DNA from: Auanema rhodensis
Lineage: Eukaryota > Animalia > Nematoda
Direction of reading: 5' to 3'
Assembly (NCBI GenBank): GCA_964057225.1
Contig: OZ059897.1
Coordinates: 4,774,001 to 4,838,000, forward strand
DNA: 64,000 nucleotides
The translations under genes were made by a program, and so were the position numbers. Below the pieces are notes generated by a model, which was given only the letters and a program-made list of their open reading frames with translations, was not told the origin of the DNA and ran no database searches. Positions 36,001 to 59,000 of the stretch are shown one piece after another; the stretch's first letter is position 1; each line of letters begins with the position of its first letter.

Positions 36001-38797
36001 GATATCTCGGTGCATTTTTAAGCTAACTCAAATCTGATAACACAGATCGACGCAGCTTAAAAATCCGCATCGAATGCACTATATTACATTGAGAAACGCT
36101 CTATACAAAAATTAGTTATGATCGTTTGAAAAATAATGCATTAGTGTATGTTGAGTTCCCATGTACACTCAACATTGCTTCCAAAAACATTTTGACAAAA
36201 ATTTTCCCGAAAAATTTCTAAATAATTTCACAAAAAGTAGATGTTTTTAGATTCCTTTTTTCAAGGCGAAGACGATGGACAATGTTATGCAACAAAAAAA
36301 TCATTTCTTCAGGGTTAAAATCGAGGATATAAGTGTGAAACTATATCAGTTGATATCTCGGTGCATTTTTAAGCTAGCTCAAATCTGATAACACAGATCG
36401 ACGCAGCTTGAAAATCCGCATCGAATGCACTATACTACATTGAGAAACGCTCTATACAAAAATTAGTTATTATCGTTTGAAAAATAATGCATTAGTGTAT
36501 GCTGAGTTCCCATGTACACTCAACATTGCTTCCAAAAACATTTTGACAAAAATTTTCCCGAAAAATTTCTAAATAATTTCACGAAAAGTAGATGTTTTTA
36601 GATTCCTTTTTTCAAGGCAAAGACGATGGACAATGTTATGCAACAAAAAAATCATTTCTTCAGGGTTAAAATCGAGGATATAAGTGTGAAACTATATCAG
36701 TTGATATCTCGGTGCATTTTTAAGCTAGCTCAAATCTGATAACACAGATCAACGCAGCTTAAAAATCCGCATCGAATGCACTATACTACATTGAGAAACG
36801 CTCTATACAAAAATTACTTATTATCGTTTGAAAAATAATGCATTAGTGTATGCTGAGTTCCCATGTACACTCAACATTGCTTCCAAAAACATTTTGACAA
36901 AAATTTTCCCGAAAAATTTCTAAATAGTTTCACAAAAAGTAGATGTTTTTAGATTCCTTTTTTCAAGGCGAAGACATTGGATAATGTTTTTCAACGAAAA
37001 AATCATTTCTTCAGGGTGAAAATCGAGAATATAAGTGTGAACCTATATCAGTTGATATCTCGGTGCATTTTTAAGCTAGCTCAAATCTGATAACACAGAT
37101 CGACGCAGCTTAAAAATCCGCATCGAATGCACTATACTACATTGAGAAACGCTATTTACAAAAATCAGTTATGATCGTTTGAAAAATAATGCATTAGTGT
37201 ATGTTGAGTTCCCATGTACACTCAACATTGCTTCCAAAAACATTTTGACAAAAATTTTCCCGAAAAATTTCTTAATAGTTTCACAAAAAGTAGATGTTTT
37301 TAGATTCCTTTTTTCAAGACGAAGACGATGGACAATGTTTTTCAACGAAAAAATCATTTCTTCAGAGTGAAAATCGAGGATATAAGTGTGAACATATATC
37401 AGTTGATATCTCGGTGCATTTTTAAGCTAACTCAAATCTGATAACACAGATCGACGCAGCTTAAAAATCCGCATCGAATGCACTATATTACATTGAGAAA
37501 CGCTCTATACAAAAATTAGTTATGATCGTTTGAAAAATAATGCATTAGTGTATGTTGAGTTCCCATGTACACTCAACATTGCTTCCAAAAACATTTTGAC
37601 AAAAATTTTCCCGAAAAATTTCTAAATAATTTCACAAAAAGTAGATGTTTTTAGATTCCTTTTTTCAAGGCGAAGACGATGGACAATGTTATGCAACAAA
37701 AAAATCATTTCTTCAGGGTTAAAATCGAGGATATAAGTGTGAAACTATATCAGTTGATATCTCGGTGCATTTTTAAGCTAGCTCAAATCTGATAACACAG
37801 ATCGACGCAGCTTGAAAATCCGCATCGAATGCACTATACTACATTGAAAAACGCTATCTACAAAAATTAGTTATGATCGTTTGAAAAATAATGCATTAGT
37901 GTATGTTGAGTTCCCATGTACACTCAACATTGCTTCCAAAAACATTTTGACAAAAATTTTCCCGAAAAATTTCTAAATAATTTCACGAAAAGTAGATGTT
38001 TTTAGATTCCTTTTTTCAAGGCAAAGACGATGGACAATGTTATGCAACAAAAAAATCATTTCTTCAGGGTTAAAATCGAGGATATAAGTGTGAAACTATA
38101 TCAGTTGATATCTCGGTGCATTTTTAAGCTAGCTCAAATCTGATAACACAGATCGACGCAGCTTGAAAATCCGCATCGAATGCACTATACTACATTGAGA
38201 AACGCTATCTACAAAAATTAGTTATGATCGTTTGAAAAATAATGCATTAGTGTATGTTGAGTTCCCATGTACACTCAACATTGCTTCCAAAAACATTTTG
38301 ACAAAAATTTTCCCGAAAAATTTCTAAATAATTTCACGAAAAGTAGATGTTTTTAGATTCCTTTTTTCAAGGCAAAGACGATGGACAATGTTATGCAACA
38401 AAAAAATCATTTCTTCAGGGTTAAAATCGAGGATATAAGTGTGAAACTATATCAGTTGATATCTCGGTGCATTTTTAAGCTAGCTCAAATCTGATAACAC
38501 AGATCGACGCAGCTTGAAAATCCGCATCGAATGCACTATACTACATTGAGAAACGCTATCTACAAAAATTAGTTATGATCGTTTGAAAAATAATGCATTA
38601 GTGTATGTTGAGTTCCCATGTACACTCAACATTGCTTCCAAAAACATTTTGACAAAAATTTTCCCGAAAAATTTCTAAATAATTTCACAAAAAGTAGATG
38701 TTTTTAGATTCCTTTTTTCGAGACGAAGACGATGGACAATGTTTTTCAACGAAAAAATCATTTCTTCAGGGTGAAAATCGAGGATATAAGTGTGAAA
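1..38797. repeat. 351-bp tandem satellite array (SatA), about 110.5 monomers, continuing past the left window edge
   Basis: AGTTCCCATGTACACTCAAC recurs at 1, 352, 7021, 14041, 21061, 28081, 35101 and 38611, all 1+351n. Monomers differ only by a limited set of recurrent substitutions. The last partial monomer ends at ...ATAAGTGTGAAA (38797). Confidence 0.99.
24922..33345. repeat. Tandem duplication of a 12-monomer (4212-bp) higher-order unit within SatA
   Basis: Rare variants recur exactly 4212 bp apart and in the same order: TAATAC (25201/29413), GTTCGAAA, ATATGTGTG, TTCGAGAC and GATTCTTTTTTTC (about 28530/32742). Ends are approximate. Confidence 0.85.
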
Positions 38798-38817
38798 TTT
38801 TTTTTAATTTCAAAAAT
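38798..38817. other. 20-bp non-satellite linker at the SatA/SatB junction
   Basis: TTTTTTTTAATTTCAAAAAT does not continue SatA (expected CTATATC) and does not match the SatB sequence preceding TTTTGAAAACCGC (GGGGAATCTAA). Boundaries are uncertain by a few bp because of A/T runs. Confidence 0.85.
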
Positions 38818-41167
38818 TTTTGAAAACCGCATCTCTTTATCTTTCACGTGAAGTGAGTTACATACCAAGTGCACATCACGTGTACATTTAATTAGCATAA
38901 ATTAAAGTTCACGTAAATTTCAAAGTCATGGTTACCATGCACTAATATCAATAAAAATTTGTTTTTAGACTAATATGGACATGGGGAATCTAATTTTGAA
39001 AACCGCATCTCTTTATCTTTCACGTGAAGCAAGTTACATACCAAGTGCACATCACGTGTACATTTAATTAGCATAAATTAAAGTTCACGTAAATTTCAAA
39101 GTCATGGTTACCATGCACTAATATCAATAAAAATTTGTTTTTAGACTAATATGGACATGGGGAATCTAATTTTGAAAACCGCATCTCTTTATCTTTCACG
39201 TGAAGTGGGTTACATACCAAGTGCACATCACGTGTACATTTAATTAGCATAAATTAAAGTTCACGTAAATTTCAAAGTCATGGTTACCATGCACTAATAT
39301 CAATAAAAATTTGTTTTTAGACTAATATGGACATGGGGAATCTAATTTTGAAAACCGCATCTCTTTATCTTTCACGTGAAGCGAGTTACATACCAAGTGC
39401 ACATCACGTATACATTTAATTAGCATAAATTATAGTTCACGTAAATTTCAAAGTCATGGTTACCATGCACCAATATCAATAAAAATTTGTTTTTAGACTA
39501 ATATGGACATGGGGAATCTAATTTTGAAAACCGCATCTCTTTATCTTTCACGTGAAGCGAGTTACATACCAAGTGCACATCACGTGTACATTTAATTAGC
39601 ATAACTTAAAGTTCACGTAAATTTCAAAGTCATGGTTACCATGCACCAATATCAATAAAAATTTGTTTTTAGACTAATATGGACATGAGGAATATAATTT
39701 TGAAAATCGCATCTCTTTATCTTTCACGTGAAGTGAGTTACATACCAAGTGCACATCACGTGTACATTTAATTAGCATAAATTAAAGTTCACGTAAATTT
39801 CAAAGTCATGGTTACCATGCACTAATATCAATAAAAATTTGTTTTTAGACTAATATGGACATGGGGAATCTAATTTTGAAAACCGCATCTCTTTATCTTT
39901 CACGTGAAGCAAGTTACATACCAAGTGCACATCACGTGCACATTTAATTAGCATAAATTAAAGTTCACGTAAATTTCAAAGTCATGGTTACCATGCACCA
40001 ATATCAATAAAAATTTGTTTTTAGACTAATATGGACATGGGGAATCTAATTTTGAAAACCGCATCTCGTTATCTTTCACGTGAAGCAAGTTACATACCAA
40101 GTGCACATCACGTGTACATTTAATTAGCATAAATTAAAGTTCACGTAAATTTCAAAGTCATGGTTACCATGCACCAATATCAATAAAAATTTGTTTTTAG
40201 ACTAATATGGACATGGGGAATCTAATTTTGAAAACCGCATCTCTTTATCTTTCACGTGAAGCGAGTTACATACCAAGTGCACATCACGTGTACATTTAAT
40301 TAGCATAAATTAAAGTTCACGTAAATTTCAAAGTCATGGTTACCATGCACCAATATCAATAAAAATTTGTTTTTAGACTAATATGGACATGGGGAATCTA
40401 ATTTTGAAAACCGCATCTCTTTATCTTTCACGTGAAGCAAGTTACATACCAAGTGCACATCACGTGCACATTTAATTAGCATAAATTAAAGTTCACGTAA
40501 ATTTCAAAGTCATGGTTACCATGCACCAATATCAATAAAAATTTGTTTTTAGACTAATATGGACATGGGGAATCTAATTGTGAAAACCGCATCTCTTTAT
40601 CTTTCACGTGAAGCGAGTTACATACCAAGTGCACATCACGTATACATTTAATTAGCATAAATTATAGTTCACGTAAATTTCAAAGTCATGGTTACCATGC
40701 ACCAATATCAATAAAAATTTGTTTTTAGACTAATATGGACATGGGGAATCTAATTGTGAAAACCGCATCTCTTTATCTTTCACGTGAAGCGAGTTACATA
40801 CCAAGTGCACATCACGTATACATTTAATTAGCATAAATTATAGTTCACGTAAATTTCAAAGTCATGGTTACCATGCACCAATATCAATAAAAATTTGTTT
40901 TTAGACTAATATGGACATGGGGAATCTAATTTTGAAAACCGCATCTCTTTATCTTTCACGTGAAGCGAGTTACATACCAAGTGCACATCACGTGTACATT
41001 TAATTAGCATAAATTAAAGTTCACGTAAATTTCAAAGTCATGGTTACCATGCACCAATATCAATAAAAATTTGTTTTTAGACTAATATGGACATGAGGAA
41101 TATAATTTTGAAAATCGCATCTCTTTATCTTTCACGTGAAGTGAGTTACATACCAAGTGCACATCAC
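38818..41167. repeat. 176-bp tandem satellite (SatB), left block, about 13.3 monomers
   Basis: TGAAAACCGCATCTC at 38821, 38997 and onward with 176-bp period; interrupted after ...GTGCACATCAC (41167). Confidence 0.99.
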
Positions 41168-43558
41168 TTTATTATGGGTGACCTGAACTTTCCTAATATC
41201 AATTGGGATCTTCTTCAGTCCTCACTCTCATCTCCTTCTAGTAAATCAATTATTCAATTTCTCCAAAGTAGTCACTCTGATCAACTTGTCAATTTTCCTA
41301 CACGTGGTAACAACATCTTAGACTACCTTATCACAAACAATCCTTCAATCATATCTAATATATCACGCTCCCCTCCATTGGGTAACTCCGATCACTTCTC
41401 GGTTACATTCTCCATCATCATCAACACCCCTGTATCCCCTCTGGATACCCTTCCTTTCTCTTCCAATACACTCTTCAATACCTCCTCACTTTCCAACTTT
41501 TCTCAACTCAATTTCTATCGAGCCGACTTCAATGCCATCAATCGCCATCTTGTCAGCATCGACTTTTCTTTGGTATTATCTGGTCTTTCCCCTCTTGACT
41601 CTTACTCCAAATTCATCAACATCCTACAATCCATAATCTCTGTATTCGTTCCTCACAAACAACCTAGGCGTAGAAAAAAAGTTGACCGCAATATTGCGGA
41701 TCTCTACTGTTACATCAAAAGGCTCAGTTCATCTATTTGCCACCGTGACGAGCTTCTCCGCAAAAAACTAACTATAAAACTAGATAGACTTATTAAACAA
41801 AAGTCTATTTTGGAAGAAGAACACATTGCTTCAACCAATAACCCCAAACTTTTTTATCGCTTCTGTAGAACTCGTCTCGGTGGTTGCTCTTCAGATATCC
41901 CCACGATTAGACTTGGTGAAGAAATATACTCGACAGACACAGAAAAAGCTTCCATTTTTGCAAGCTCTTTTTCTGTCAAACCAAGTATTTCATCGGATTT
42001 AATCAACAGCTCCTCTCGCCCTTCTTCTATCATTGATTTTATAGACATTTCTCCCGAAAAAGTCTATAAAGTTCTTTCTCATCTTCCTCTCAGAGTTTCT
42101 ACTTCTTCTGATGGCATTCCCTACTACTTTCTTAATCAGTGCGCCTCTACTCTTTGCTACCCACTTGCCTTCATTTTTCACAATTTACTCGTTTCTTCTT
42201 CATGCCCTCCGGACTGGAAGAAAGCTTGGATCCGTCCTGTTTTCAAATCCGGAAATCGCTCTAATCCTTCAAACTATCGCCCTATATCATTAACACCAAG
42301 TCTTTCCAAAGTTTTTGAGCGACTCATTTCACCCCCGCTCCTCCACTTTGGCATTTCTACTGGATCTATATCTGCTCACCAGCACGCTTTTCTTCCTAAA
42401 CGTAATACCATATCAGCAATCATTAACAATCATATTGCCTGGAGATCATGTTTAGATAAAAACATTCCAGTCTATACTGCTTTTATAGACTTCTCTAAAG
42501 CTTTTGATCTAATTGATCACTCGGTTCTTTTCCACAAATTTAAAACCATTGGTATCTGCGGTTCTCTTCAAACTTTTCTCAAAAACTTCATCACTGGCAG
42601 ATCTTACTCAGTTCTTGTCAATGGTTCTCTTTCTACTTCTGTAAACTTATCTTGTGGTGTCCCACAAGGCACTGTTCTCGGTCCTCTTCTATTCCTTTTC
42701 TTTATTAATGACATTACGTCTTCTCTCCCTGAAGACGTTCATCCTACACTTTTTGCCGATGATCTCAAACTATACAGTACTAATCCGGTAAGTCTACAGA
42801 TTGCCTTAAACACAATCAACGCCTGGTGCAAAAATAATGGAATGATGGTCAACACCACCAAATCCAAAATTATGATTGTGTGCAATAATAGCTCAACCCT
42901 CAACCCCACCGAGCCATTTACCTTTGGTGAGTTTCCTTTAGATTTTGTACCTCATTATAAAGACCTTGGAGTCTTAACTGATAACAATCTAACATTTGAT
43001 TGTCACATAAACGCCATCTCTTGCGCCGCAGCTCTCAAATGTCGCATCCTTCTACGTTGCTTCTACTCTAGATCACCTTCATTTATGTTCAACCTTTTTT
43101 GCAGCTACGTTCGACCAATCCTTGAATATGCATCCGTGATATGGTCTCCCCAAGTATCTAAAAAAATATCTCGTATTGAGATGGTTCAAAAAAAATTCTT
43201 GCGAGCAGTCTTCTCAAGAGCAGGAATTTTTTCCGACTACAAAAGTCAGCTCACTTTTTTGAATGCTCAAGAACTATCAACCAGGAGACAGGTAACTGAT
43301 CTAGGTTTCTATTTCTCTCAAATTAAAGACGTATCAACGGACAGTATTTTAAGAATTTTTCAAATTAAACATTTCACCCACTCTCTTCGCAGACACCAAT
43401 GGAATATCGACTATCCCGAGCTTCGGAAAAAGGCGACAAGAAATGGTATTGAGTACAGAAGCATCAAAACATGGAACGATCTACCTGAAAACCTTATCAA
43501 CCTTACTAATGTTCATAATTTTAAAAAACACCTACTCTCTGCTCCAATTGATTTGTAA
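41087..43558 (+). CDS. 823-aa ORF: 27 satellite-derived codons fused to a truncated LINE ORF2 (partial APE endonuclease + reverse transcriptase)
   Basis: Endonuclease motifs GDLN (41177), NILDY and SDH (41387-41395). RT motifs NYRPISL, DFSKAFD, GVPQGTVLGPLLF, FADD (42752-42763) and YKDLG. C-terminal LEYASVIWSP and WNDLP as in CR1/Jockey-group ORF2s. No stops or frameshifts. The N-terminal half of the endonuclease and any ORF1 are missing. Confidence refers to the RT ORF identity, not to expression. Confidence 0.9.
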   Translation: MDMRNIILKIASLYLSREVSYIPSAHHFIMGDLNFPNINWDLLQSSLSSPSSKSIIQFLQSSHSDQLVNFPTRGNNILDYLITNNPSIISNISRSPPLGNSDHFSVTFSIIINTPVSPLDTLPFSSNTLFNTSSLSNFSQLNFYRADFNAINRHLVSIDFSLVLSGLSPLDSYSKFINILQSIISVFVPHKQPRRRKKVDRNIADLYCYIKRLSSSICHRDELLRKKLTIKLDRLIKQKSILEEEHIASTNNPKLFYRFCRTRLGGCSSDIPTIRLGEEIYSTDTEKASIFASSFSVKPSISSDLINSSSRPSSIIDFIDISPEKVYKVLSHLPLRVSTSSDGIPYYFLNQCASTLCYPLAFIFHNLLVSSSCPPDWKKAWIRPVFKSGNRSNPSNYRPISLTPSLSKVFERLISPPLLHFGISTGSISAHQHAFLPKRNTISAIINNHIAWRSCLDKNIPVYTAFIDFSKAFDLIDHSVLFHKFKTIGICGSLQTFLKNFITGRSYSVLVNGSLSTSVNLSCGVPQGTVLGPLLFLFFINDITSSLPEDVHPTLFADDLKLYSTNPVSLQIALNTINAWCKNNGMMVNTTKSKIMIVCNNSSTLNPTEPFTFGEFPLDFVPHYKDLGVLTDNNLTFDCHINAISCAAALKCRILLRCFYSRSPSFMFNLFCSYVRPILEYASVIWSPQVSKKISRIEMVQKKFLRAVFSRAGIFSDYKSQLTFLNAQELSTRRQVTDLGFYFSQIKDVSTDSILRIFQIKHFTHSLRRHQWNIDYPELRKKATRNGIEYRSIKTWNDLPENLINLTNVHNFKKHLLSAPIDL

Positions 43559-44047
43559 ACCATCCATTGTAATTAATGTTCTCACCTCTCGAAAAACTAT
43601 TTTTTTTCTTTTATCAGGCTCCTTTTTATTTGTAGTTCGTATTTTTTCACACTTCTCTATGACCACATGGCAACAGTCTACCATCTATTTTTCTTTGTCC
43701 CTTCTCAATAATTGTTACTTCGTCACTATTCCTATAGACATTAGTCATACGGATCGGACGCTAGTTACCTCCAAATTGCTAGAACGGGCTTGCCTCACAT
43801 CACGAGTACCACCGTACCTAACAACCACATTAGTGAGGTCAGCCATTGTGCTGAACAAACCCCAAGCATACAGCAAGAATTTTATTTGGCAGACTGTTCA
43901 CTATTGATCATAGATAAGCGAGCTCTTATCGAACTTACAATATTAAAAGTCCTTTTTTATGTTCTTATTGAATGGTTCTTGATTTTTTCACTCCATGACT
44001 TAACAGCTACTGTCTTAACCTGTGATATTGAACAATAAACATTAAAC
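41168..44047 (+). mobile_element. 5'-truncated non-LTR retrotransposon (LINE, APE-type, most likely CR1/L2/Jockey group), 2880 bp
   Basis: Unique C/T-rich sequence flanked by in-register SatB: left ...CACATCAC|, right |GTGTACATTT. The phase shift across it (5520 mod 176 = 64) fits a 2880-bp insertion. It encodes the endonuclease C-terminal part plus RT, has a 489-bp 3' UTR, and ends in AATAAAC-ATTAAAC. No LTRs. Clade assigned from motif style only. Confidence 0.95.
43559..44047 (+). other. LINE 3' UTR ending in an imperfect 7-bp tandem tail (AATAAAC ATTAAAC, 44034-44047) that includes AATAAA
   Basis: Lies between the ORF stop (43558) and resumption of SatB at 44048. No poly(A) tract; short-repeat tails are typical of CR1/L2-type elements. 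Confidence 0.8.
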
Positions 44048-47000
44048 GTGTACATTTAATTAGCATAAATTAAAGTTCACGTAAATTTCAAAGTCATGGT
44101 TACCATGCACTAATATCAATAAAAATTTGTTTTTAGACTAATATGGACATGGGGAATCTAATTTTGAAAACCGCATCTCTTTATCTTTCACGTGAAGCAA
44201 GTTACATACCAAGTGCACATCACGTGCACATTTAATTAGCATAAATTAAAGTTCACGTAAATTTCAAAGTCATGGTTACCATGCACCAATATCAATAAAA
44301 ATTTGTTTTTAGACTAATATGGACATGGGGAATCTAATTTTAAAAACCGCATCTCTTTATCTTTCACGTGAAGTGAGTTACATACCAAGTGCACAGCACG
44401 TGTACATTTAATTAGCATAAATTAAAGTTCACGTAAATTTCAAAGTCATGGTTACCATGCACCAATATTAATAAAAATTTGTTTTTAGACTAATATGGAC
44501 ATGGGGAATCTAATTTTGAAAACCGCGTCTCTTTATCTTTCACGTGAAGCAAGTTACATACCAAGTGCACATCACGTGTACATTTAATTAGCATAAATTA
44601 AAGTTCACGTAAATTTCAAAGTCATGGTTACCATGCACTAATATCAATAAGAATTTGTTTTTAGACTAATATGGACATGGGGAATCTAATTTTGAAAACC
44701 GCATCTCTTTATCTTTCACGTGAAGCAAGTTACATACCAAGTGCACATCACGTGCACATTTAATTAGCATAAATTAAAGTTCACGTAAATTTCAAAGTCA
44801 TGGTTACCATGCACTAATATCAATAAAAATTTGTTTTTAGACTAATATGGACATGGGGAATCTAATTTTAAAAACCGCATCTCTTTATCTTTCACGTAAA
44901 GTGAGTTACATACCAAGTGCACAGCACGTGTACATTTAATTAGCATAAATTAAAGTTCACGTAAATTTCAAAGTCATGGTTACCATGCACCAATATCAAT
45001 AAAAATTTGTTTTTAGACTAATATGGACATGGGGAATCTAATTTTGAAAACCGCATCTCTTTATCTTTCACGTGAAGTGAGTTACATACCAAGTGCACAG
45101 CACGTGTACATTTAATTAGCATAAATTAAAGTTCACGTAAATTTCAAAGTCATGGTTACCATGCACTAATATCAATAAAAATTTGTTTTTAGACTAATAT
45201 GGACATGGGGAATCTAATTTTGAATACCGCATCTCTTTATCTTTCACGTGAAGCAAGTTACATACCAAGTGCACATCACGTGCACATTTAATTAGCATAA
45301 ATTAAAGTTCACGTAAATTTCAAAGTCATGGTTACCATGCACCAATATCAATAAAAATTTGTTTTTAGACTAATATGGACATGGGGAATCTAATATTGAA
45401 AACCGCATCTCTTTATCTTTCACGTGAAGTGAGTTACATACCAAGTGCACAGCACGTGTACATTTAATTAGCATAAATTAAAGTTCACGTAAATTTCGAA
45501 GTCATGGTTACCATGCACCAATATCAATAAAAATTTGTTCTTAGACTAATATGGACATGGGGACTCTAATTTTAAAAACCGCATCTCTTTATCTTTCACG
45601 TGAAGTGAGTTACATACCAAGTGCACAGCACGTGTACATTTAATTAGCATAAATTAAAGTTCACGTAAATTTCAAAGTCATGGTTACCATGCACTAATAT
45701 CAATAAAAATTTGTTTTTAGACTAATATGGACATGGGGAATCTAATTGTGAAAACCGCATCTCTTTATCTTTCACGTGAAGCAAGTTACATACCAAGTGC
45801 ACATCACGTGCACATTTAATTAGCATAAATTAAAGTTCACGTAAATTTCAAAGTCATGGTTACCATGAACCAATATCAATAAAAATTTGTTTTTAGACTA
45901 ATATGGACATGGGGAATCTAATTTTGAAAACCGCGTCTCTTTATCTTTCACGTGAAGTGAGTTACATACCAAGTGCACATCACGTGTACATTTAATTAGC
46001 ATAAATTAAAGTTCACGTAAATTTCAAAGTCATGGTTACCATGCACCAATATCAATAAAAATTTGTTCTTAGACTAATATGGACATGGGGAATCTAATTT
46101 TAAAAACCGCATCTCTTTATCTTTCACGTGAAGTGAGTTACATACCAAGTGCACAGCACGTGTACATTTAATTAGCATAAATTAAAGTTCACGTAAATTT
46201 CAAAGTCATGGTTACCATGCACTAATATCAATAAAAATTTGTTTTTAGACTAATATGGACATGGGGAATCTAATTTTGAATACCGCATCTCTTTATCTTT
46301 CACGTGAAGCAAGTTACATACCAAGTGCACATCACGTGCACATTTAATTAGCATAAATTAAAGTTCACGTAAATTTCAAAGTCATGGTTACCATGCACCA
46401 ATATCAATAAAAATTTGTTTTTAGACTAATATGGACATGGGGAATCTAATTTTGAAAACCGCATCTCTTTATCTTTCACGTGAAGCGAGTTACATACCAA
46501 GTGCACATCACGTGTACATTTAATTAGCATAAATTAAAGTTCACGTAAATTTCAAAGTCATGGTTACCATGCACCAATATCAATAAAAATTTGTTTTTAG
46601 ACTAATATGGACATGGGGAATCTAATTTTGAAAACCGCATCTCTTTATCTTTCACGTGAAGCGAGTTACATACCAAGTGCACATCACGTGTACATTTAAT
46701 TAGCATAAATTAAAGTTCACGTAAATTTCAAAGTCATGGTTACCATGCACCAATATCAATAAAAATTTGTTTTTAGACTAATATGGACATGGGGAATCTA
46801 ATTTTGAAAACCGCATCTCTTTATCTTTCACGTGAAGTGAGTTACATACCAAGTGCACAGCACGTGTACATTTAATTAGCATAAATTAAAGTTCACGTAA
46901 ATTTCAAAGTCATGGTTACCATGCACCAATATCAATAAAAATTTGTTTTTAGACTAATATGGACATGGGGAATCTAATATTGAAAACCGCATCTCTTTAT

Positions 47001-50000
47001 CTTTCACGTGAAGTGAGTTACATACCAAGTGCACAGCACGTGTACATTTAATTAGCATAAATTAAAGTTCACGTAAATTTCAAAGTCATGGTTACCATGC
47101 ACCAATATCAATAAAAATTTGTTCTTAGACTAATATGGACATGGGGAATCTAATTTTAAAAACCGCATCTCTTTATCTTTCACGTGAAGTGAGTTACATA
47201 CCAAGTGCACAGCACGTGTACATTTAATTAGCATAAATTAAAGTTCACGTAAATTTCAAAGTCATGGTTACCATGCACCAATATCAATAAAAATTTGTTT
47301 TTAGACTAATATGGACATGGGGAATCTAATTTTGAAAACCGCGTCTCTTTATCTTTCACGTGAAGTGAGTTACATACCAAGTGCACATCACGTGTACATT
47401 TAATTAGCATAAATTAAAGTTCACGTAAATTTCAAAGTCATGGTTACCATGCACTAATATCAATAAAAATTTGTTTTTAGACTAATATGGACATGGGGAA
47501 TCTAATTTTGAATACCGCATCTCTTTATCTTTCACGTGAAGCAAGTTACATACCAAGTGCACATCACGTGTACATTTAATTAGCATAAATTAAAGTTCAC
47601 GTAAATTTCAAAGTCATGGTTACCATGCACCAATATCAATAAAAATTTGTTTTTAGACTAATATGGACATGGGGAATCTAATTTTGAATACCGCATCTCT
47701 TTATCTTTCACGTGAAGCAAGTTACATACCAAGTGCACATCACGTGTACATTTAATTAGCATAAATTAAAGTTCACGTAAATTTCAAAGTCATGGTTACC
47801 ATGCACCAATATCAATAAAAATTTGTTTTTAGACTAATATGGACATGGGGAATCTAATTTTGAATACCGCATCTCTTTATCTTTCACGTGAAGCAAGTTA
47901 CATACCAAGTGCACATCACGTGTACATTTAATTAGCATAAATTAAAGTTCACGTAAATTTCAAAGTCATGGTTACCATGCACTAATATCAATAAAAATTT
48001 GTTTTTAGACTAATATGGACATGGGGAATCTAATTTTGAATACCGCATCTCTTTATCTTTCACGTGAAGCAAGTTACATACCAAGTGCACATCACGTGCA
48101 CATTTAATTAGCATAAATTAAAGTTCACGTAAATTTCAAAGTCATGGTTACCATGCACCAATATCAATAAAAATTTGTTTTTAGACTAATATGGACATGG
48201 GGAATCTAATTTTAAAAACCGCATCTCTTTATCTTTCACGTGAAGCGAGTTACATACCAAGTGCACATCACGTGTACATTTAATTAGCATAAATTAAAGT
48301 TCACGTAAATTTCAAAGTCATGGTTACCATGCACCAATATCAATAAAAATTTGTTTTTAGACTAATATGGACATGGGGAATCTAATTTTGAAAACCGCAT
48401 CTCTTTATCTTTCACGTGAAGCGAGTTACATACCAAGTGCACATCACGTGTACATTTAATTAGCATAAATTAAAGTTCACGTAAATTTCAAAGTCATGGT
48501 TACCATGCACCAATATCAATAAAAATTTGTTTTTAGACTAATATGGACATGGGGAATCTAATTTTGAAAACCGCATCTCTTTATCTTTCACGTGAAGTGA
48601 GTTACATACCAAGTGTACATCACGTGCACATTTAATTAGCATAAATTAAAGTTCACGTAAATTTCAAAGTCATGGTTACCATGCACCAATATCAATAAAA
48701 ATTTGTTTTTAGACTAATATGGACATGGGGAATCTAATTTTGAATACCGCATCTCTTTATCTTTCACGTGAAGCAAGTTACATACCAAGTGCACATCACG
48801 TGTACATTTAATTAGCATAAATTAAAGTTCACGTAAATTTCAAAGTCATGGTTACCATGCACCAATATCAATAAAAATTCGTTTTTAGACTAATATGGAC
48901 ATGGGGAATCTAATTTTGAAAACCGCATCTCTTTATCTTTCACGTGAAGTGAGTTACATACCAAGTGCACAGCACGTGTACATTTAATTAGCATAAATTA
49001 AAGTTCACGTAAATTTCAAAGTCATGGTTACCATGCACTAATATCAATAAAAATTTGTTTTTAGACTAATATGGACATGGGGAATCTAATTTTGAATACC
49101 GCATCTCTTTATCTTTCACGTGAAGCAAGTTACATACCAAGTGCACATCACGTGCACATTTAATTAGCATAAATTAAAGTTCACGTAAATTTCAAAGTCA
49201 TGGTTACAATGCACCAATATCAATAAAAATTTGTTTTTAGACTAATATGGACATGGGGAATCTAATTTTAAAAACCGCATCTCTTTATCTTTCACGTGAA
49301 GCGAGTTACATACCAAGTGCACATCACGTGTACATTTAATTAGCATAAATTAAAGTTCACGTAAATTTCAAAGTCATGGTTACCATGCACCAATATCAAT
49401 AAAAATTTGTTTTTAGACTAATATGGACATGGGGAATCTAATTTTGAAAACCGCATCTCTTTATCTTTCACGTGAAGCGAGTTACATACCAAGTGCACAT
49501 CACGTGTACATTTAATTAGCATAAATTAAAGTTCACGTAAATTTCAAAGTCATGGTTACCATGCACCAATATCAATAAAAATTTGTTTTTAGACTAATAT
49601 GGACATGGGGAATCTAATTTTGAAAACCGCATCTCTTTATCTTTCACGTGAAGCGAGTTACATACCAAGTGCACATCACGTGTACATTTAATTAGCATAA
49701 ATTAAAGTTCACGTAAATTTCAAAGTCATGGTTACCATGCACCAATATCAATAAAAATTTGTTTTTAGACTAATATGGACATGGGGAATCTAATTTTGAA
49801 AACCGCATCTCTTTATCTTTCACGTGAAGTGAGTTACATACCAAGTGTACATCACGTGCACATTTAATTAGCATAAATTAAAGTTCACGTAAATTTCAAA
49901 GTCATGGTTACCATGCACCAATATCAATAAAAATTTGTTTTTAGACTAATATGGACATGGGGAATCTAATATTGAAAACCGCATCTCTTTATCTTTCACG

Positions 50001-53000
50001 TGAAGCAAGTTACATACCAAGTGCACATCACGTGTACATTTAATTAGCATAAATTAAAGTTCACGTAAATTTCAAAGTCATGGTTACCATGCACCAATAT
50101 CAATAAAAATTTGTTTTTAGACTAATATGGACATGGGGAATCTAATTTTGAAAACCGCATCTCTTTATCTTTCACGTGAAGCAAGTTACGAACCAAGTGC
50201 ACATCACGTGTACATTTAATTAGCATAAATTAAAGTTCACGTAAATTTCAAAGTCATGGTTACCATGCACCAATATGAATAAAAATTTGTTTTTAGACTA
50301 ATATGGACATGGGGAATCTAATTTTGAAAACCGCATCTCTTTATCTTTCACGTGAAGCGAGTTACATACCAAGCGCACATCACGTGTACATTTAATTAGC
50401 ATAAATTAAAGTTCACGTAAATTTCAAAGTCATGGTTACCATGAACCAATATCAATAAAAATTTGTTTTTAGACTAATATGGACATGGGGAATCTAATTT
50501 TGAAAACCGCATCTCTTTATCTTTCACGTGAAGTGAGTTACATACCAAGTGCACAGCACGTGTACATTTAATTAGCATAAATTAAAGTTCACGTAAATTT
50601 CAAAGTCATGGTTACCATGCACTAATATCAATAAAAATTTGTTTTTAGACTAATATGGACATGGGGAATCTAATTTTGAAAACCGCATCTCTTTATCTTT
50701 CACGTGAAGCAAGTTACATACCAAGTGCACATCACGTGCACATTTAATTAGCATAAATTAAAGTTCACGTAAATTTCAAAGTCATGGTTACCATGCACCA
50801 ATATCAATAAAAATTTGTTTTTAGACTAATATGGACATGGGGAATCTAATTTTGAAAACCGCATCTCTTTATCTTTCACGTGAAGTGAGTTACATACCAA
50901 GTGCACATCACGTGTACATTTAATTAGCATAAATTAAAGTTCACGTAAATTTCAAAGTCATGGTTACCATGCACTAATATCAATAAGAATTTGTTTTTAG
51001 ACTAATATGGACATGGGGAATCTAATTTTGAAAACCGCATCTCTTTATCTTTCACGTGAAGCGAGTTACATACCAAGTGCACATCACGTGCACATTTAAT
51101 TAGCATAAATTAAAGTTCACGTAAATTTCAAAGTCATGGTTACCATGCACCAATATCAATAAAAATTTGTTTTTAGACTAATATGGACATGGGGAATCTA
51201 ATTTTAAAAACCGCATCTCTTTATCTTTCACGTGAAGCAAGTTACATACCAAGTGCATAGCACGTGTACATTTAATTAGCATAAATTAAAGTTCACGTAA
51301 ATTTCAAAGTCATGGTTACCATGCACCAATATCAATAAAAATTTGTTTTTAGACTAATATGGACATGGGGAATCTAATTGTGAAAACCGCATCTCTTTAT
51401 CTTTCACGTGAAGCGAGTTACATACCAAGTGCACATCACGTGTACATTTAATTAACATAAATTAAAGTTCACGTAAATTTCAAACTCATGGTTACCATGC
51501 ACCAATATCAATAAAAATTTGTTTTTAGACTAATATGGACATGGGGAATCTAATTTTGAAAACCGCATCTCATTATCTTTCACGTGAAGTGGGTTACATA
51601 CCAAGTGCACAGCACGTGTACATTTAATTAGCATAAATTAAAGTTCACGTAAATTTCAAAGTCATGGTTACCATGCACCAATATCAATAAAAATTTGTTT
51701 TTAGACTAATATGGACATGGGGAATCTAATTGTGAAAACCGCATCTCTTTATCTTTCACGTGAAGCAAGTTACATACCAAGTGCACATCACGTGCACATT
51801 TAATTAGCATAAATTAAAGTTCACGTAAATTTCAAACTCATGGTTACCATGCACCAATATCAATAAAAATTTGTTTTTAGACTAATATGGACATGGGGAA
51901 TCTAATTTTGAAAACCGCATCTCTTTATCTTTCACGTGAAGCAAGTTACATACCAAGTGCACAGCACGTGTACATTTAATTAGCATAAATTAAAGTTCAC
52001 GTAAATTTCAAAGTCATGGTTACCATGCACCAATATCAATAAAAATTTGTTTTTAGACTAATATGGACATGAGGAATCTAATTTTGAAAACCGCATCTCT
52101 TTATCTTTCACGTGAAGCGAGTTACATACCAAGTGCACAGCACGTGTACATTTAATTAGCATAAATTAAAGTTCACGTAAATTTCAAAGTCATGGTTACC
52201 ATGCACCAATATCAATAAAAATTTGTTTTTAGACTAATATGGACATGGGGAATCTAATTTTGAAAACCGCATCTCTTTATCTTTCACGTGAAGTGAGTTA
52301 CATACCAAGTGCACATCACGTGTACATTTAATTAGCATAAATTAAAGTTCACGTAAATTTCAAAGTCATGGTTACCATGCACTAATATCAATAAGAATTT
52401 GTTTTTAGACTAATATGGACATGGGGAATCTAATTTTGAAAACCGCATCTCTTTATCTTTCACGTGAAGCGAGTTACATACCAAGTGCACATCACGTGCA
52501 CATTTAATTAGCATAAATTAAAGTTCACGTAAATTTCAAAGTCATGGTTACCATGCACTAATATCAATAAAAATTTGTTTTTAGACTAATATGGACATGG
52601 GGAATCTAATTTTAAAAACCGCATCTCTTTATCTTTCACGTGAAGCAAGTTACATACCAAGTGCATAGCACGTGTACATTTAATTAGCATAAATTAAAGT
52701 TCACGTAAATTTCAAACTCATGGTTACCATGCACCAATATCAATAAAAATTTGTTTTTAGACTAATATGGACATGGGGAATCTAATTTTGAAAACCGCAT
52801 CTCATTATCTTTCACGTGAAGCAAGTTACATACCAAGTGCACATCACGTGTACATTTAATTAGCATAAATTAAAGTTCACGTAAATTTCAAAGTCATGGT
52901 TACCATGCACCAATATCAATAAAAATTTGTTTTTAGACTAATATGGACATGGGGAATCTAATATTGAAAACCGCATCTCTTTATCTTTCACGTGAAGCAA

Positions 53001-56000
53001 GTTACATCCCAAGTGCACATCACGTGTACATTTAATTAGCATAAATTAAAGTTCACGTAAATTTCAAAGTCATGGTTACCATGCACCAATATCAATGAAA
53101 ATTTGTTTTTAGACTAATATGGATATGGGGAATCTAATTTTGAAAACCGCATCTCTTTATCTTTCACGTGAAGCGAGTTACATACCAAGTGCACATCACG
53201 TGTGCATTTAATTAGCATAAATTAAAGTTCACGTAAATTTCAAAATCATGGTTACCATGCACCAATATCAATAAAAATTTGTTTTTAGACTAATATGCAC
53301 ATGGGGAATCTAATTTTAAAAACCGCATCTCTTTATCTTTCACGTGAAGTGAGTTACATACCAAGTGCACAGCACGTGTACATTTAATTAGCATAAATTA
53401 AAGTTCACGTAAATTTCAAAGTCATGGTTACCATGCACTAATATCAATAAAAATTTGTTTTTAGACTAATATGGACATGGGGAATCTAATTTTGAAAACC
53501 GCATCTCTTTATCTTTCACGTGAAGCAAGTTACATACCAAGTGCTCATCACGTGCACATTTAATTAGCATAAATTGAAGTTCACGTAAATTTCAAAGTCA
53601 TGGTTACCATGCACCAATATCAATAAAAATTTGTTTTTAGACTAATATGGACATGGGGAATCTAATTTTGAAAACCGCATCTCTTTATCTTTCACGTGAA
53701 GCGAGTTACATACCAAGTGCACATCACGTGTACATTTAATTAGCATAAATTAAAGTTCACGTAAATTTCAAAGTCATGGTTACCATGCACCAACATCAAT
53801 AAAAATTTGTTTTTAGACTAATATGGACATGGGGAATCTAATTTTGAAAACCGCGTCTCTTTATCTTTCACGTGAAGCGAGTTACATACCAAGTGCACAT
53901 CACGTGTACATTTAATTAGCATAAATTAAAGTTCACGTAAATTTCAAAGTCATGGTTACCATGCACCAATATCAATAAAAATTTGTTTTTAGACTAATAT
54001 GGACATGGGGAATCTAATTTTAAAAACCGCATCTCTTCATCTTTCACGTGAAGCAAGTTACATACCAAGTGCACAGCACGTGTACATTTAATTAGCATAA
54101 ATTAAAGTTCACGTAAATTTCAAAGTCATGGTTACCATGCACCAATATCAATAAAAATTTGTTTTTAGACTAATATGGACATGGGGAATCTAATTTTAAA
54201 AACCGCATCTCTTTATCTTTCACGTGAAGCGAGTTACATACCAAGTGCACATCACGTGTACATTTAATTAGCATAAATTAAAGTTCACGTAAATTTCAAA
54301 GTCATGGTTACCATGCACCAATATCAATAAAAATTTGTTTTTAGACTAATATGGACATGGGGAATCTAATTTTGAAAACCGCATCTCATTATCTTTCACG
54401 TGAAGTGGGTTACATACCAAGTGCACATCACGTGTACATTTAATTAGCATAAATTAAAGTTAACGTAAATTTCAAAGTCATGGTTACCATGCACCAATAT
54501 CAATGAAAATTTGTTTTTAGACTAATATGGACATGGGGAATCTAATTTTGAAAACCGCATCTCTTTATCTTTCACGTGAAGCAAGTTACATACCAAGTGC
54601 ACATCACGTGCACATTTAATTAGCATAAATTAAAGTTCACGTAAATTTCAAAGTCATGGTTACCATGCACCAATATCAATAAAAATTTGTTTTTAGACTA
54701 ATATGGACATGGGGAATCTAATTTTGAAAACCGCATCTCTTTATCTTTCACGTGAAGTGAGTTACATACCAAGTGCACATCACGTGTACATTTAATTAGC
54801 ATAAATTAAAGTTCACGTAAATTTCAAAGTCATGGTTACCATGCACTAATATCAATAAGAATTTGTTTTTAGACTAATATGGACGTGGGGAATCTAATTT
54901 TGAAAACCGCATCTCTTTATCTTTCACGTGAAGCGAGTTACATACCAAGTGCACATCACGTGCACATTTAATTAGCATAAATTAAAGTTCACGTAAATTT
55001 CAAAGTCATGGTTACCATGCACTAATATCAATAAAAATTTGTTTTTAGACTAATATGGACATGGGGAATCTAATTTTAAAAACCGCATCTCTTTATCTTT
55101 CACGTGAAGCAAGTTACATACCAAGTGCATAGCACGTGTACATTTAATTAGCATAAATTAAAGTTCACGTAAATTTCAAACTCATGGTTACCATGCACCA
55201 ATATCAATAAAAATTTGTTTTTAGACTAATATGGACATGGGGAATCTAATTTTGAAAACCGCATCTCATTATCTTTCACGTGAAGCAAGTTACATACCAA
55301 GTGCACATCACGTGTACATTTAATTAGCATAAATTAAAGTTCACGTAAATTTCAAAGTCATGGTTACCATGCACCAATATCAATAAAAATTTGTTTTTAG
55401 ACTAATATGGACATGGGGAATCTAATATTGAAAACCGCATCTCTTTATCTTTCACGTGAAGCAAGTTACATCCCAAGTGCACATCACGTGTACATTTAAT
55501 TAGCATAAATTAAAGTTCACGTAAATTTCAAAGTCATGGTTACCATGCACCAATATCAATAAAAATTTGTTTTTAGACTAATATGGATATGGGGAATCTA
55601 ATTTTGAAAACCGCATCTCTTTATCTTTCACGTGAAGCGAGTTACATACCAAGTGCACATCACGTGTGCATTTAATTAGCATAAATTAAAGTTCACGTAA
55701 ATTTCAAAATCATGGTTACCATGCACCAATATCAATAAAAATTTGTTTTTAGACTAATATGCACATGGGGAATCTAATTTTAAAAACCGCATCTCTTTAT
55801 CTTTCACGTGAAGTGAGTTACATACCAAGTGCACAGCACGTGTACATTTAATTAGCATAAATTAAAGTTCACGTAAATTTCAAAGTCATGGTTACCATGC
55901 ACTAATATCAATAAAAATTTGTTTTTAGACTAATATGGACATGGGGAATCTAATTTTGAAAACCGCATCTCTTTATCTTTCACGTGAAGCAAGTTACATA

Positions 56001-59000
56001 CCAAGTGCTCATCACGTGCACATTTAATTAGCATAAATTGAAGTTCACGTAAATTTCAAAGTCATGGTTACCATGCACCAATATCAATAAAAATTTGTTT
56101 TTAGACTAATATGGACATGGGGAATCTAATTTTGAAAACCGCATCTCTTTATCTTTCACGTGAAGCGAGTTACATACCAAGTGCACATCACGTGTACATT
56201 TAATTAGCATAAATTAAAGTTCACGTAAATTTCAAAGTCATGGTTACCATGCACCAACATCAATAAAAATTTGTTTTTAGACTAATATGGACATGGGGAA
56301 TCTAATTTTGAAAACCGCATCTCTTCATCTTTCACGTGAAGCAAGTTACATACCAAGTGCACAGCACGTGTACATTTAAATAGCATAAATTAAAGTTCAC
56401 GTAAATTTCAAAGTCATGGTTACCATGCACCAATATCAATAAAAATTTGTTTTTAGACTAATATGGACATGGGGAATCTAATTTCGAAAACCGCATCTCT
56501 TTATCTTTCACGTGAAGCGAGTTACATACCAAGTGCACATCACGTGTACATTTAATTAGCATAAATTAAAGTTCACGTAAATTTCAAAGTCATGGTTACC
56601 ATGCACCAATATCAATAAAAATTTGTTTTTAGACTAATATGGACATGGGGAATCTAATTTTGAAAACCGCATCTCTTTATCTTTCACGTGAAGTGAGTTA
56701 CATACCAAGTGTACATCACGTGCACATTTAATTAGCATAAATTAAAGTTCACGTAAATTTCAAAGTCATGGTTACCATGCACCAATATCAATAAAAATTT
56801 GTTTTTAGACTAATATGGACATGGGGAATCTAATATTGAAAACCGCATCTCTTTATCTTTCACGTGAAGTGAGTTACATACCAAGTGCACAGCACGTGTA
56901 CATTTAATTAGCATAAATTAAAGTTCACGTAAATTTCAAAGTCATGGTTACCATGCACCAATATCAATAAAAATTTGTTTTTAGACTAATATGGACATGG
57001 GGAATCATCTAATTTTGAAAACCGCATCTCTTTATCTTTCACGTGAAGTGAGTTACATACCAAGTGTACATCACGTGTACATTTAATTAGCATAAATTAA
57101 AGTTCACGTAAATTTCAAACTCATGGTTACCATGCACCAATATCAATAAAAATTTGTTTTTAGACTAATATGGACATGGGGAATCTAATTTTGAAAACCG
57201 CATCTCTTTATCTTTCACGTGAAGTGGGTTACATACCAAGTGCACATCACGTGTACATTTAATTAGCATAAATTAAAGTTCACGTAAATTTCAAAGTCAT
57301 GGTTACCATGCACCAATATCAATAAAAATTTGTTTTTAGACTAATATGGACATGGGGAATCTAATTTTAAAAACCGCATCTCTTTATCTTTCTCGTGAAG
57401 CAAGTTACATACCAAGTGCACAGCACGTGTACATTTAATTAGCATAAATTAAAGTTCACGTAAATTTCAAAGTCATGGTTACCATGCACCAATATCAATA
57501 AAAATTTGTTTTTAGACTAATATGGACATGGGGAATCTAATTTTGAAAACCGCATCTCTTTATCTTTCACGTGAAGCGAGTTACATACCAAGTGCACAGC
57601 ACGTGTACATTTAATTAGCATAAATTAAAGTTCACGTAAATTTCAAAGTCATGGTTACCATGCACCAATATCAATAAAAATTTGTTTTTAGACTAATATG
57701 CACATGGGGAATCTAATTTTAAAAACCGCATCTCTTTATCTTTCACGTGAAGTGAGTTACATACCAAGTGCACAGCACGTGTACATTTAATTAGCATAAA
57801 TTAAAGTTCACGTAAATTTCAAAGTCATGGTTACCATGCACTAATATCAATAAAAATTTGTTTTTAGACTAATATGCACATGGGGAATCTAATTTTGAAA
57901 ACCGCATCTCTTTATCTTTCACGTGAAGCAAGTTACATACCAAGTGCACATCACGTGCACATTTAATTAGCATAAATTAAAGTTCACGTAAATTTCAAAG
58001 TCATGGTTACCATGAACCAATATCAATAAAAATTTGTTTTTAGACTAATATGGACATGGGGAATCTAATTTTAAAAACCGCATCTCTTTATCTTTCACGT
58101 GAAGCAAGTTACATACCAAGTGCATAGCACGTGTACATTTAATTAGCATAAATTAAAGTTCACGTAAATTTCAAAGTCATGGTTACCATGCACCAATATC
58201 AATAAAAATTTGTTTTTAGACTAATATGGACATGGGGAATCTAATTGTGAAAACCGCATCTCTTTATCTTTCACGTGAAGCGAGTTACATACCAAGTGCA
58301 CATCACGTGTACATTTAATTAACATAAATTAAAGTTCACGTAAATTTCAAACTCATGATTACCATGCACCAATATCAATAAAAATTTGTTTTTGGACTAA
58401 TATGGACATGGGGAATCTAATTTTGAAAACCGCATCTCTTTATCTTTCACGTGAAGTGGGTTACATACCAAGTGCACATCACGTGTACATTTAATTAGCA
58501 TAAATTAAAGTTCACGTAAATTTCAAAGTCATGGTTACCATGCACCAATATCAATAAAAATTTGTTTATAGACTAATATGGACATGGGGAATCTAATTTT
58601 AAAAACCGCATCTCTTTATCTTTCACGTGAAGCAAGTTACATACCAAGTGCACAGCACGTGTACATTTAATTAGCATAAATTAAAGTTCACGTAAATTTC
58701 AAAGTCATGGTTACCATGCACCAATATCAATAAAAATTTGTTTTTAGACTAATATGGACATGGGGAATCTAATTTTAAAAACCGCATCTCTTTATCTTTC
58801 ACGTGAAGCAAGTTACATACCAAGTGCACAGCACGTGTACATTTAATTAGCATAAATTAAAGTTCACGTAAATTTCAAAGTCATGGTTACCATGCACCAA
58901 TATCAATAAAAATTTGTTTTTAGACTAATATGGACATGGGGAATCTAATTTTGAAAACCGCATCTCTTTATCTTTCACGTGAAGCGAGTTACATACCAAG

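Follow-up and report, generated by a model that had tools for sequence, protein, structure and literature searches.

How does a retrotransposon fragment come to possess a long open reading frame (ORF) whose start codon is supplied by satellite DNA, and does such a fusion have consequences? The question is raised by the window, which is the whole 64,000-nucleotide stretch of the nematode Auanema rhodense analysed here (Auanema rhodensis in assembly GCA_964057225.1, contig OZ059897.1, positions 4,774,001 to 4,838,000, forward strand). Within it, a 5'-truncated long interspersed nuclear element (LINE) is embedded in a satellite array and continues the reading frame of the adjacent satellite monomer. 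The original prediction, which named the satellite SatB, proposed that satellite read-through could express an endonuclease-crippled reverse transcriptase (RT) from this locus and thereby open a route to RNA-mediated copying of the satellite. The main fact absent from that prediction is the specificity of the LINE for one satellite site. Very probably, the feature represents a very young and 5'-truncated copy of a non-LTR retrotransposon (one without long terminal repeats) specific for a site in satellite AT-1, whose lineage integrates at CATCAC/ACGTGT (a slash marks the junction here and below) in one orientation.

A LINE lineage specific for one position of AT-1

Judging by sequence, SatB is the AT-1 satellite of Auanema rhodense, because the published 28-nt AT-1 probe for fluorescence in situ hybridisation (FISH) matches its monomers: the window contains 114 of these 176-bp units that match with at most one mismatch. 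AT-1 is a germline-restricted repeat located at the ends of all autosomes, and it undergoes somatic elimination from the 12-cell stage (bioRxiv 10.64898/2026.08.27.747507). The eliminated DNA contains RT-bearing gene models, which are mostly silent, and few genes in it are expressed; the same paper makes no mention of LINE targeting to AT-1 (bioRxiv 10.64898/2026.08.27.747507).

A DNA search of the genome returned six longer copies that are 99.5-99.7% identical to the window copy over the entire insert, a subfamily at 92%, and families at about 70% DNA identity. The lineage consists of at least four diverged families, including three at 58-70% protein identity, and its insertion point within the 176-bp monomer is CATCAC/ACGTGT. 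The 3' junction, in which ...AA is followed by satellite unit position 1, was found in all 17 loci with a readable satellite side; these represent at least four families, lie on contigs C1, C3-C8, C79-C85 and C98, and have differing 5' ends and duplications. In every satellite-embedded locus, LINE and satellite are on the same strand, the exceptions being the off-target copies L011-L014 and the rearranged locus L068. The target duplications vary between copies (2, 3, about 10-12, 19, 38 and about 52 bp). Since both the 5' ends and the duplication lengths differ, the insertions represent independent integrations and not segmental copies. Off-target insertions account for one of about 14 events in the 99% and 92% families, and a few relatives are found in other contexts (L064, L066 and L017).

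The longest copy of the 99% family, L031, measures 5093 bp and comprises 18-20-nt repeats at its 5' end, an ORF1 of 346 amino acids (aa) and, overlapping the latter, a 1037-codon ORF2, in which Pfam recognises Exo_endo_phos at 124-317 and RVT_1 at 608-811. The LINE protein has PDB sequence matches to L1 ORF2p and R2 RT, and a protein search found about 45 genomic relatives with complete ORF2. The lineage is a target-specific non-LTR retrotransposon with an apurinic/apyrimidinic (AP) endonuclease and an RT. Regarding its clade, the Pfam, PDB and Atlas matches of ORF2 are neutral, the protein Atlas giving generic endonuclease-RT clusters only. A faint hint of the CR1 group comes from a ...WNxLP-like motif at the C-terminus and from the short repeats (ACATTAA) that end the 3' side. 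The terminal (A)ACATTAA of the 3' untranslated region (UTR) is repeated or altered in sibling copies.

Full-length elements (L031 at C4:22994000-23003999, reverse strand; L032, L033, L037, L040 and L075) begin with a variable count of an 18-20-nt unit, for example CCGCGCCGTGACCTCATT repeated about 25 times. In L074, an ORF1-truncated copy (C95:185130-185640), the truncated end (GAAATTATCTTCCTTTT) is reiterated about 10 times. A 5'-processing ribozyme gave no Rfam match in two full-length loci at E < 0.1.

The window copy and its chimeric reading frame

Every part of the chimeric ORF described in the original prediction was recovered by ORF translation and Pfam, i.e. a satellite ATG and 27 satellite codons fused in frame to a 796-codon LINE ORF with an intact RT. 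The ATG lies at 41087 in the context ACTAATATGG, which is as described, and so is the TTTTTAG heptamer upstream of it. The LINE part begins at 41168 on a codon boundary and stays open for 796 codons up to the TAA at 43556-43558. Compared with the 1037-codon ORF2 of intact relatives, the window copy begins at codon 242, so the predicted truncation and crippling of the endonuclease are real, and just the C-terminal part of that domain is left. The assumption that the start codon comes from the satellite holds only in part: the satellite ATG is present, but a private substitution at codon 30 provides the LINE part with a start codon of its own.

The frame relation follows from the geometry of the target. 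The satellite monomer carries a 30-codon mini-ORF (consensus MDMGNLILKTASLYLSREASYIPSAHHVYI followed by a stop codon); of 118 monomers, 112 have it intact. The LINE insertion point falls exactly at the end of its codon 27, and it stops three codons beyond the target. As the mini-ORF ends three codons past the target, truncated copies that are in phase receive its ATG and 27 codons, and this geometry makes the satellite start codon of the window ORF a by-product. Coding constraint on the mini-ORF was considered and rejected: its variants are mostly non-synonymous, with no sign of constraint, and its intactness is uninformative at 97% monomer identity. The frame of the mini-ORF relative to ORF1 is not constant among full-length copies: the differences are 1, 0, 1, 1, 2 and 0, with stops between. 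The chance of a match in frame and orientation had been put at 1 in 6; orientation is forced by the integration, so the value is at best 1 in 3.

The window copy is young. It differs from each sibling copy at 9-14 positions and carries four private substitutions in 2878 bp, namely ACG>ATG (T>M), TAC>TTT (Y>F, a double change) and one synonymous change. This low number accounts for the open frame and the intact RT, and no selection is needed to explain them. The original prediction had allowed for this possibility, with the caveat that recent insertion might be all that an intact ORF signifies, and this caveat is borne out. The comparison with the siblings gave no signal of purifying selection on the ORF, the copy being too young.

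The satellite monomer upstream of the junction belongs to the local array. The left array shows an 8-monomer period (39682-41167), in which the variants at 39682, 39689 and 39701 return at 41090, 41097 and 41109. Four variants of the junction monomer that had seemed private recur exactly eight monomers (1408 bp) upstream in the same array, which identifies the monomer as local array sequence. This pattern rules out a satellite leader brought in from elsewhere, as would be expected of a secondary copy made through RNA. The dispersed chimeric retrocopies anticipated in the original prediction did not appear either, the window junction being single-copy in the assembly.

The insertion is a product of target-primed reverse transcription (TPRT). 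An endonuclease nick followed by TPRT set the 3' junction, reverse transcription halted at ORF2 codon 242, and the end of the complementary DNA (cDNA) was joined at the same target with a 2-bp duplication. The 5' junction (CACATCAC/TTTATTATGGGT) shows 1 nt of microhomology. As a mobile element, the window copy was most likely dead on arrival.

Reading frame at the other truncated junctions

The in-frame junction is not unique to the window copy. It recurs in eight of ten other truncated copies. The junctions were gathered from DNA searches, seven IUPAC patterns and small regional fetches. The patterns were anchored on ...GCACATCAC, with non-satellite bases required after offsets 0-4; they catch about 56-81% of the junctions at these offsets, and solely in monomers whose anchor is exactly CACATCAC. 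Out of 235 candidate loci from the protein search, 57 were scored. The census set, from which the window copy was left out, comprises ten independent events in which the LINE part begins within ORF2 and is joined beside the mini-ORF. Several further loci were rejected as truncated junctions. At L062/L063, L067 and L069 the LINE continues upstream beyond a stop or frameshift; L064 lies in the context of the 351-bp satellite; another repeat adjoins L066 and L073; the satellite upstream of L068 is inverted; and L077 adjoins an integrase ORF like that of an LTR element.

At eight of the ten junctions, the satellite ATG is in frame with the LINE and the frame stays open (Table 1). The binomial probability of this outcome is 0.0034 against an expectation of 1/3 and 0.012 against one of 0.4. 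If L015 and L016 are merged, seven of nine junctions are in frame (P = 0.008-0.025). The likelihood ratio for a frame effect is about 14-58. The check proposed in the original prediction, a search for an excess of in-frame SatB junctions among other copies, thus had a positive outcome, with neither frame nor orientation random (orientation is constant).

Two technical causes of the excess were examined and rejected. Enumeration of ORF2 breakpoints gives in-frame fractions of 0.335 with microhomology of 0-1 nt, 0.39 with at least 3 nt and 0.43 with at least 4 nt, and real junctions with known parents have 0-3 nt. For the IUPAC patterns, the expected in-frame fraction among passing sequences is 0.335.

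The frame does not correlate with retention of the RT. In-frame copies retain 87 to 796 ORF2 residues, and some, with 87-164 residues and no RT, are also in frame. Both the LINE phase and the satellite offset vary, and two of the junctions contain filler; it is the fused frame itself that is preserved. This points to a filter for translatability or to chance. Outside the census set, two distal junctions, which lie some 52 bp inside the monomer, differ in this respect: L065 gains an in-frame satellite ATG and L009 does not. The off-target copy L011 has an in-frame upstream ATG.

One explanation is chance. The frame match would then be fortuitous both here and family-wide, the truncated copies would be inert debris, and eight of ten would represent a small-sample fluctuation or hidden non-independence. 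The prior for any sensing of the frame at integration is low, the sample is small, and under a conservative setting (seven of ten at p = 0.43) P rises to 0.08. On the other hand, P lies at 0.003-0.025 under reasonable settings, and the frame hypothesis had been set out before the data were inspected. Moreover, two of the in-frame junctions contain filler or inverted sequence and are beyond the help of microhomology, and the off-target L011 and distal L065 also have an in-frame upstream ATG. Chance has a good though somewhat less than even claim to be the explanation; the balance tips slightly towards an excess that is real, and a filter for translatable satellite-LINE chimeras may exist.

If there is such a filter, AT-1 could act as a ready-made 5' expression cassette, consisting of TTTTTAG, the ATG and 27 codons, and in-frame truncated copies would be preferentially retained or re-copied. 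This suggestion, drawn from sequence patterns, is put forward tentatively and is rather more doubtful than the excess itself. In the preferred version, the arrays would be transcribed through, and in-frame chimeric RNAs, which end at the natural ORF2 stop, would escape nonsense-mediated decay (NMD) and would more often be reused as templates or kept. Template switching may be involved and could also explain the breakpoint shared by L015 and L016. Three observations weigh against the cassette and, in part, against a frame effect of any kind. The census is partial, with 57 of the 235 candidate loci scored. The full independence of L015 and L016, with their one breakpoint, is doubtful. Finally, re-copying of in-frame chimeras would be expected to yield several dispersed copies per junction, but with local tandem duplicates set aside, every junction occurs once.

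A host benefit might produce the same excess. In-frame C-terminal ORF2 pieces could bind the LINE 3' UTR, damp retrotransposition and, as repressor fragments selected by the host, become fixed more often. At least the last 87 ORF2 residues and the natural stop are common to all in-frame copies, and selection on the fused product could explain why the frame is kept across filler junctions. However, the copies lie in DNA that is reported to be mostly silent and is eliminated from the soma, it is doubtful whether a single insertion could confer a sufficient selective advantage, and the copies are too young for a signal in the ratio of non-synonymous to synonymous substitutions (dN/dS). Selected repressor fragments are unlikely and form a weaker alternative than the escape from NMD.

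Splicing is a further way of joining satellite to LINE sequence. The truncated copies would then be retro-copies of spliced read-through RNAs, with the GT after CATCAC as donor and a cryptic acceptor in ORF2, like spliced L1 insertions. The satellite does read CAC/GTGTAC at the target, and the parent of L010 has CAG directly before the retained part. L010 is, however, the sole exception: the AG of an acceptor is lacking in seven of the eight junctions with a known parent; in the parent of the window copy, TTC precedes the break, and most junctions keep 1-4 satellite bases past the would-be donor. This origin is extremely improbable.

Short inverted copies of the adjacent LINE occur at two 5' junctions and measure 43 nt in L070 (C6:21496800-21497200) and 21 nt in L076 (C4:23316240-23316520). 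They resemble the products of twin priming or snap-back synthesis.

Possible traces of satellite read-through

In the full-length copy L032, 16-20 nt of satellite from directly upstream of the target stand between the duplicated target and the LINE 5' end. At the 3' end of L005/L006, L018 and L019, there are extra ACGTGT target bases and a tail repeat. Transcription through the array is expected to give both the leader of L032 and the 3' ACGTGT duplications, as for other target-specific LINEs. Reverse transcription of satellite-containing RNA over short stretches is plausible in the light of these junctions, and to this extent the idea of a satellite-containing template RNA survives. There is no sign that the window copy itself copies satellite; its junction is single-copy and its upstream monomer local.

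In its fuller form, the idea was that an RT, deficient in endonuclease but still active, is expressed from the window locus by satellite read-through, acts at existing nicks and spreads the satellite via RNA. An intact ORF with all RT motifs, the retained LINE 3' UTR and the short satellite stretches reverse transcribed at other junctions would fit it. Besides the unique junction and the local origin of the monomer, several facts speak against it. The age of the copy accounts for its intactness, and the in-frame excess, which extends to copies of 87-164 residues, does not depend on whether an RT is kept. The tandem LINE fragments L011-L014, L024-L027 and L053/L054 are array-spaced, consistent with unequal exchange. 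The roughly 45 relatives with complete ORF2 would also supply far more RT. An active RT from this locus is very unlikely, and the notion of a revived, satellite-copying RT finds no support.

Layout of the window and related loci

The 2878-bp insert (41168-44045) splits the 176-bp array and has a GC content above that of the satellite. The 351-bp satellite, which occupies more than half of the window, is probably the second autosomal terminal repeat; its boundary with the 176-bp array is abrupt, with a gap of about 20 bp (38797-38817). Two more ORFs reach into the LINE 3' UTR (43443-43907, 154 codons; 43790-44038, 82 codons); they have no family match and are probably spurious.

Table 1. Features of the window and 5' junctions of other truncated LINE copies; offsets are in satellite bases, and the frame column refers to the satellite ATG.
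Feature	Position	Strand	Frame	Basis or remark
351-bp satellite array, 110 units	1-38796	+		Tandem Repeats Finder; outside the studied feature
176-bp satellite (SatB, AT-1), left array, 13 units, 8-monomer higher-order pattern	38818-41167	+		Tandem Repeats Finder; AT-1 probe match
TTTTTAG, predicted splice-acceptor-like heptamer, 6 nt 5' of mini-ORF ATG	41074-41080	+		In every monomer, invariant in consensus
Chimeric ORF, 823 codons plus stop	41087-43558	+		ORF translation
First 27 mini-ORF codons, pure satellite (MDMRNIILKIASLYLSREVSYIPSAHH), cut after codon 27 by the insertion	41087-41167	+		Monomer comparison
Residual C-terminal AP-endonuclease part with SDH motif, N-terminal half gone	41153-41404	+		Pfam Exo_endo_phos_2, aa 23-106, profile positions 29-116 of 117
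AC, left copy of 2-bp target-site duplication (right copy 44046-44047)	41166-41167	+		Junction alignment
5'-truncated LINE copy, 2878 bp, positions 2216-5093 of the 5093-bp relative L031	41168-44045	+		Genome DNA search
Private ACG>ATG substitution, internal start codon (codon 30)	41174-41176	+		Comparison with sibling copies
Reverse transcriptase domain RVT_1, aa 394-597, FADD present	42266-42877	+		Pfam
LINE 3' UTR, ending in ...GAACAATAAACATTAA	43559-44045	+		Junction comparison
176-bp satellite, right array, restarting at unit position 1 (ACGTGTACATTT)	44046-64000	+		Tandem Repeats Finder; junction comparison
L010	C4:2636377		In frame	Offset 0
L015	C80:927961		In frame	Offset 4
L016	C83:675741		In frame	Offset 4; breakpoint of L015, other subfamily (99.6% to L008 vs 99.2% to the window's family)
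L028	C6:21519442		In frame	Offset 4
L052	C4:23239072		In frame	Offset 2
L053/L054	C5:21873868		In frame	About 5 nt filler
L071	C83:11283		In frame	Offset 2
L076	C4:23316366		In frame	Small target deletion and 21-nt inverted piece
L055			Not in frame	Frame +2
L070			Not in frame	5' inversion with stops

Some LINE fragments have become parts of tandem repeats. The sole clear off-target insertion of the 99% family (L011-L014, C3:10703371-10714935), 1540 bp in non-satellite DNA, is amplified fourfold in tandem, with about 3.26-3.5 kb from one copy to the next, the LINE fragment thereby entering a new tandem repeat. Within the 176-bp satellite, a 469-bp LINE 3' fragment has been taken into higher-order repeats at L024-L027 (C4:2668352-2673225), and a LINE 3' fragment is likewise amplified within the array at L053/L054 (C5:21873098-21877639); the spacing of these fragments is 1.35-1.7 kb or 3.8 kb. 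L005 and L006 (C6:21562516-21571414) are near-identical long copies in inverted orientation, about 3 kb apart. Both share an odd 3' junction (AACATTAA-ACGTGT-AAACATTAA-ACGTGTAC), which identifies them as an inverted duplication of one insertion.

Other loci concern the target itself. L064 (C4:4570342-4570742), at 61% protein identity, has the 351-bp satellite upstream in reverse orientation and is either off target or a member of a family with another satellite target. A repeat with units of about 30 nt (CAGCTGACGCC...AAAAGTATG) adjoins the satellite at CACGTG/ in L073 (C83:184800-185290), and the same repeat adjoins a LINE in L066 (C4:11455284-11455684); it may be another mobile element that uses or disrupts the same region. 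Internally deleted monomers with one end at or near CATCAC occur in the upstream flank of L016 (C83, some 300 bp 5' of the junction), where their other end lies near +52, and at L041-L044, L050/L051 and L060/L061. They may be scars of abortive nicking; the search patterns were anchored on the same site, so no enrichment can be claimed.

Relation to known target-specific LINEs

The closest parallels are R1 and R2 of insect ribosomal DNA (rDNA). Like these, the AT-1 LINE uses one fixed target in a tandem unit, inserts in one orientation with variable 5' truncations and junctions, leaves traces of target sequence in its template RNA, and comprises several diverged families on one target. Its endonuclease is of the AP type, like that of R1 and unlike that of R2. 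The target differs, being a non-genic 176-bp satellite instead of an RNA gene, and no self-cleaving ribozyme was found in the Rfam search of the two full-length loci mentioned above.

TRAS and SART, which insert into the telomere repeat, and the microsatellite-specific Waldo, Mino, Kibi, Koshi and Dong are likewise AP-endonuclease LINEs on non-coding tandem repeats and have similar 3' read-through or re-priming variants. The AT-1 LINE differs in its long complex monomer, which offers a single site per 176 bp. NeSL-1 and R4/Dong share the nematode host and a multicopy target, but their endonuclease is restriction-like and their targets are spliced-leader genes, rDNA or TAA repeats, in contrast to the AP endonuclease of the AT-1 LINE.

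In their formation, the truncated copies resemble ordinary dead-on-arrival LINEs and chimeric host-L1 ORFs, with TPRT truncation, microhomology of 0-3 nt, 5' inversions (L070 and L076) and an occasional upstream ATG. What sets them apart from ordinary dead-on-arrival copies is that the fixed target always places the same mini-ORF upstream, and that eight of ten are in frame compared with an expectation of about one in three. Endonuclease-independent L1 retrotransposition offers a parallel insofar as the product of the window ORF would be an RT lacking a functional endonuclease, as the original prediction supposed. Unlike in that system, no insertion attributable to the window copy was found, and its own junctions are canonical endonuclease-site junctions.

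Significance

A whole LINE lineage is specialised for a single nucleotide position in a complex satellite, and the worm discards this satellite from all body cells. Because AT-1 is eliminated from these cells, insertion into it is free of cost to the soma. Published lists of the targets of specific LINEs do not include satellites of this kind (PMC4640811).

Since the target is fixed, every truncated copy faces the same upstream mini-ORF, which provides a natural experiment on the reading frame and the fate of LINE fragments. The first count, with eight of ten junctions in frame, suggests that reading frame may matter for that fate. If the cassette explanation is true, AT-1 would be transcribed and translated in the germline, and translatability, for example through escape from NMD, would shape which fragments persist. 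Should the excess be confirmed by a full census and by RNA, it would provide direct evidence for the translation of a 'junk' satellite and would show that RNA surveillance or selection filters retrotransposon debris.

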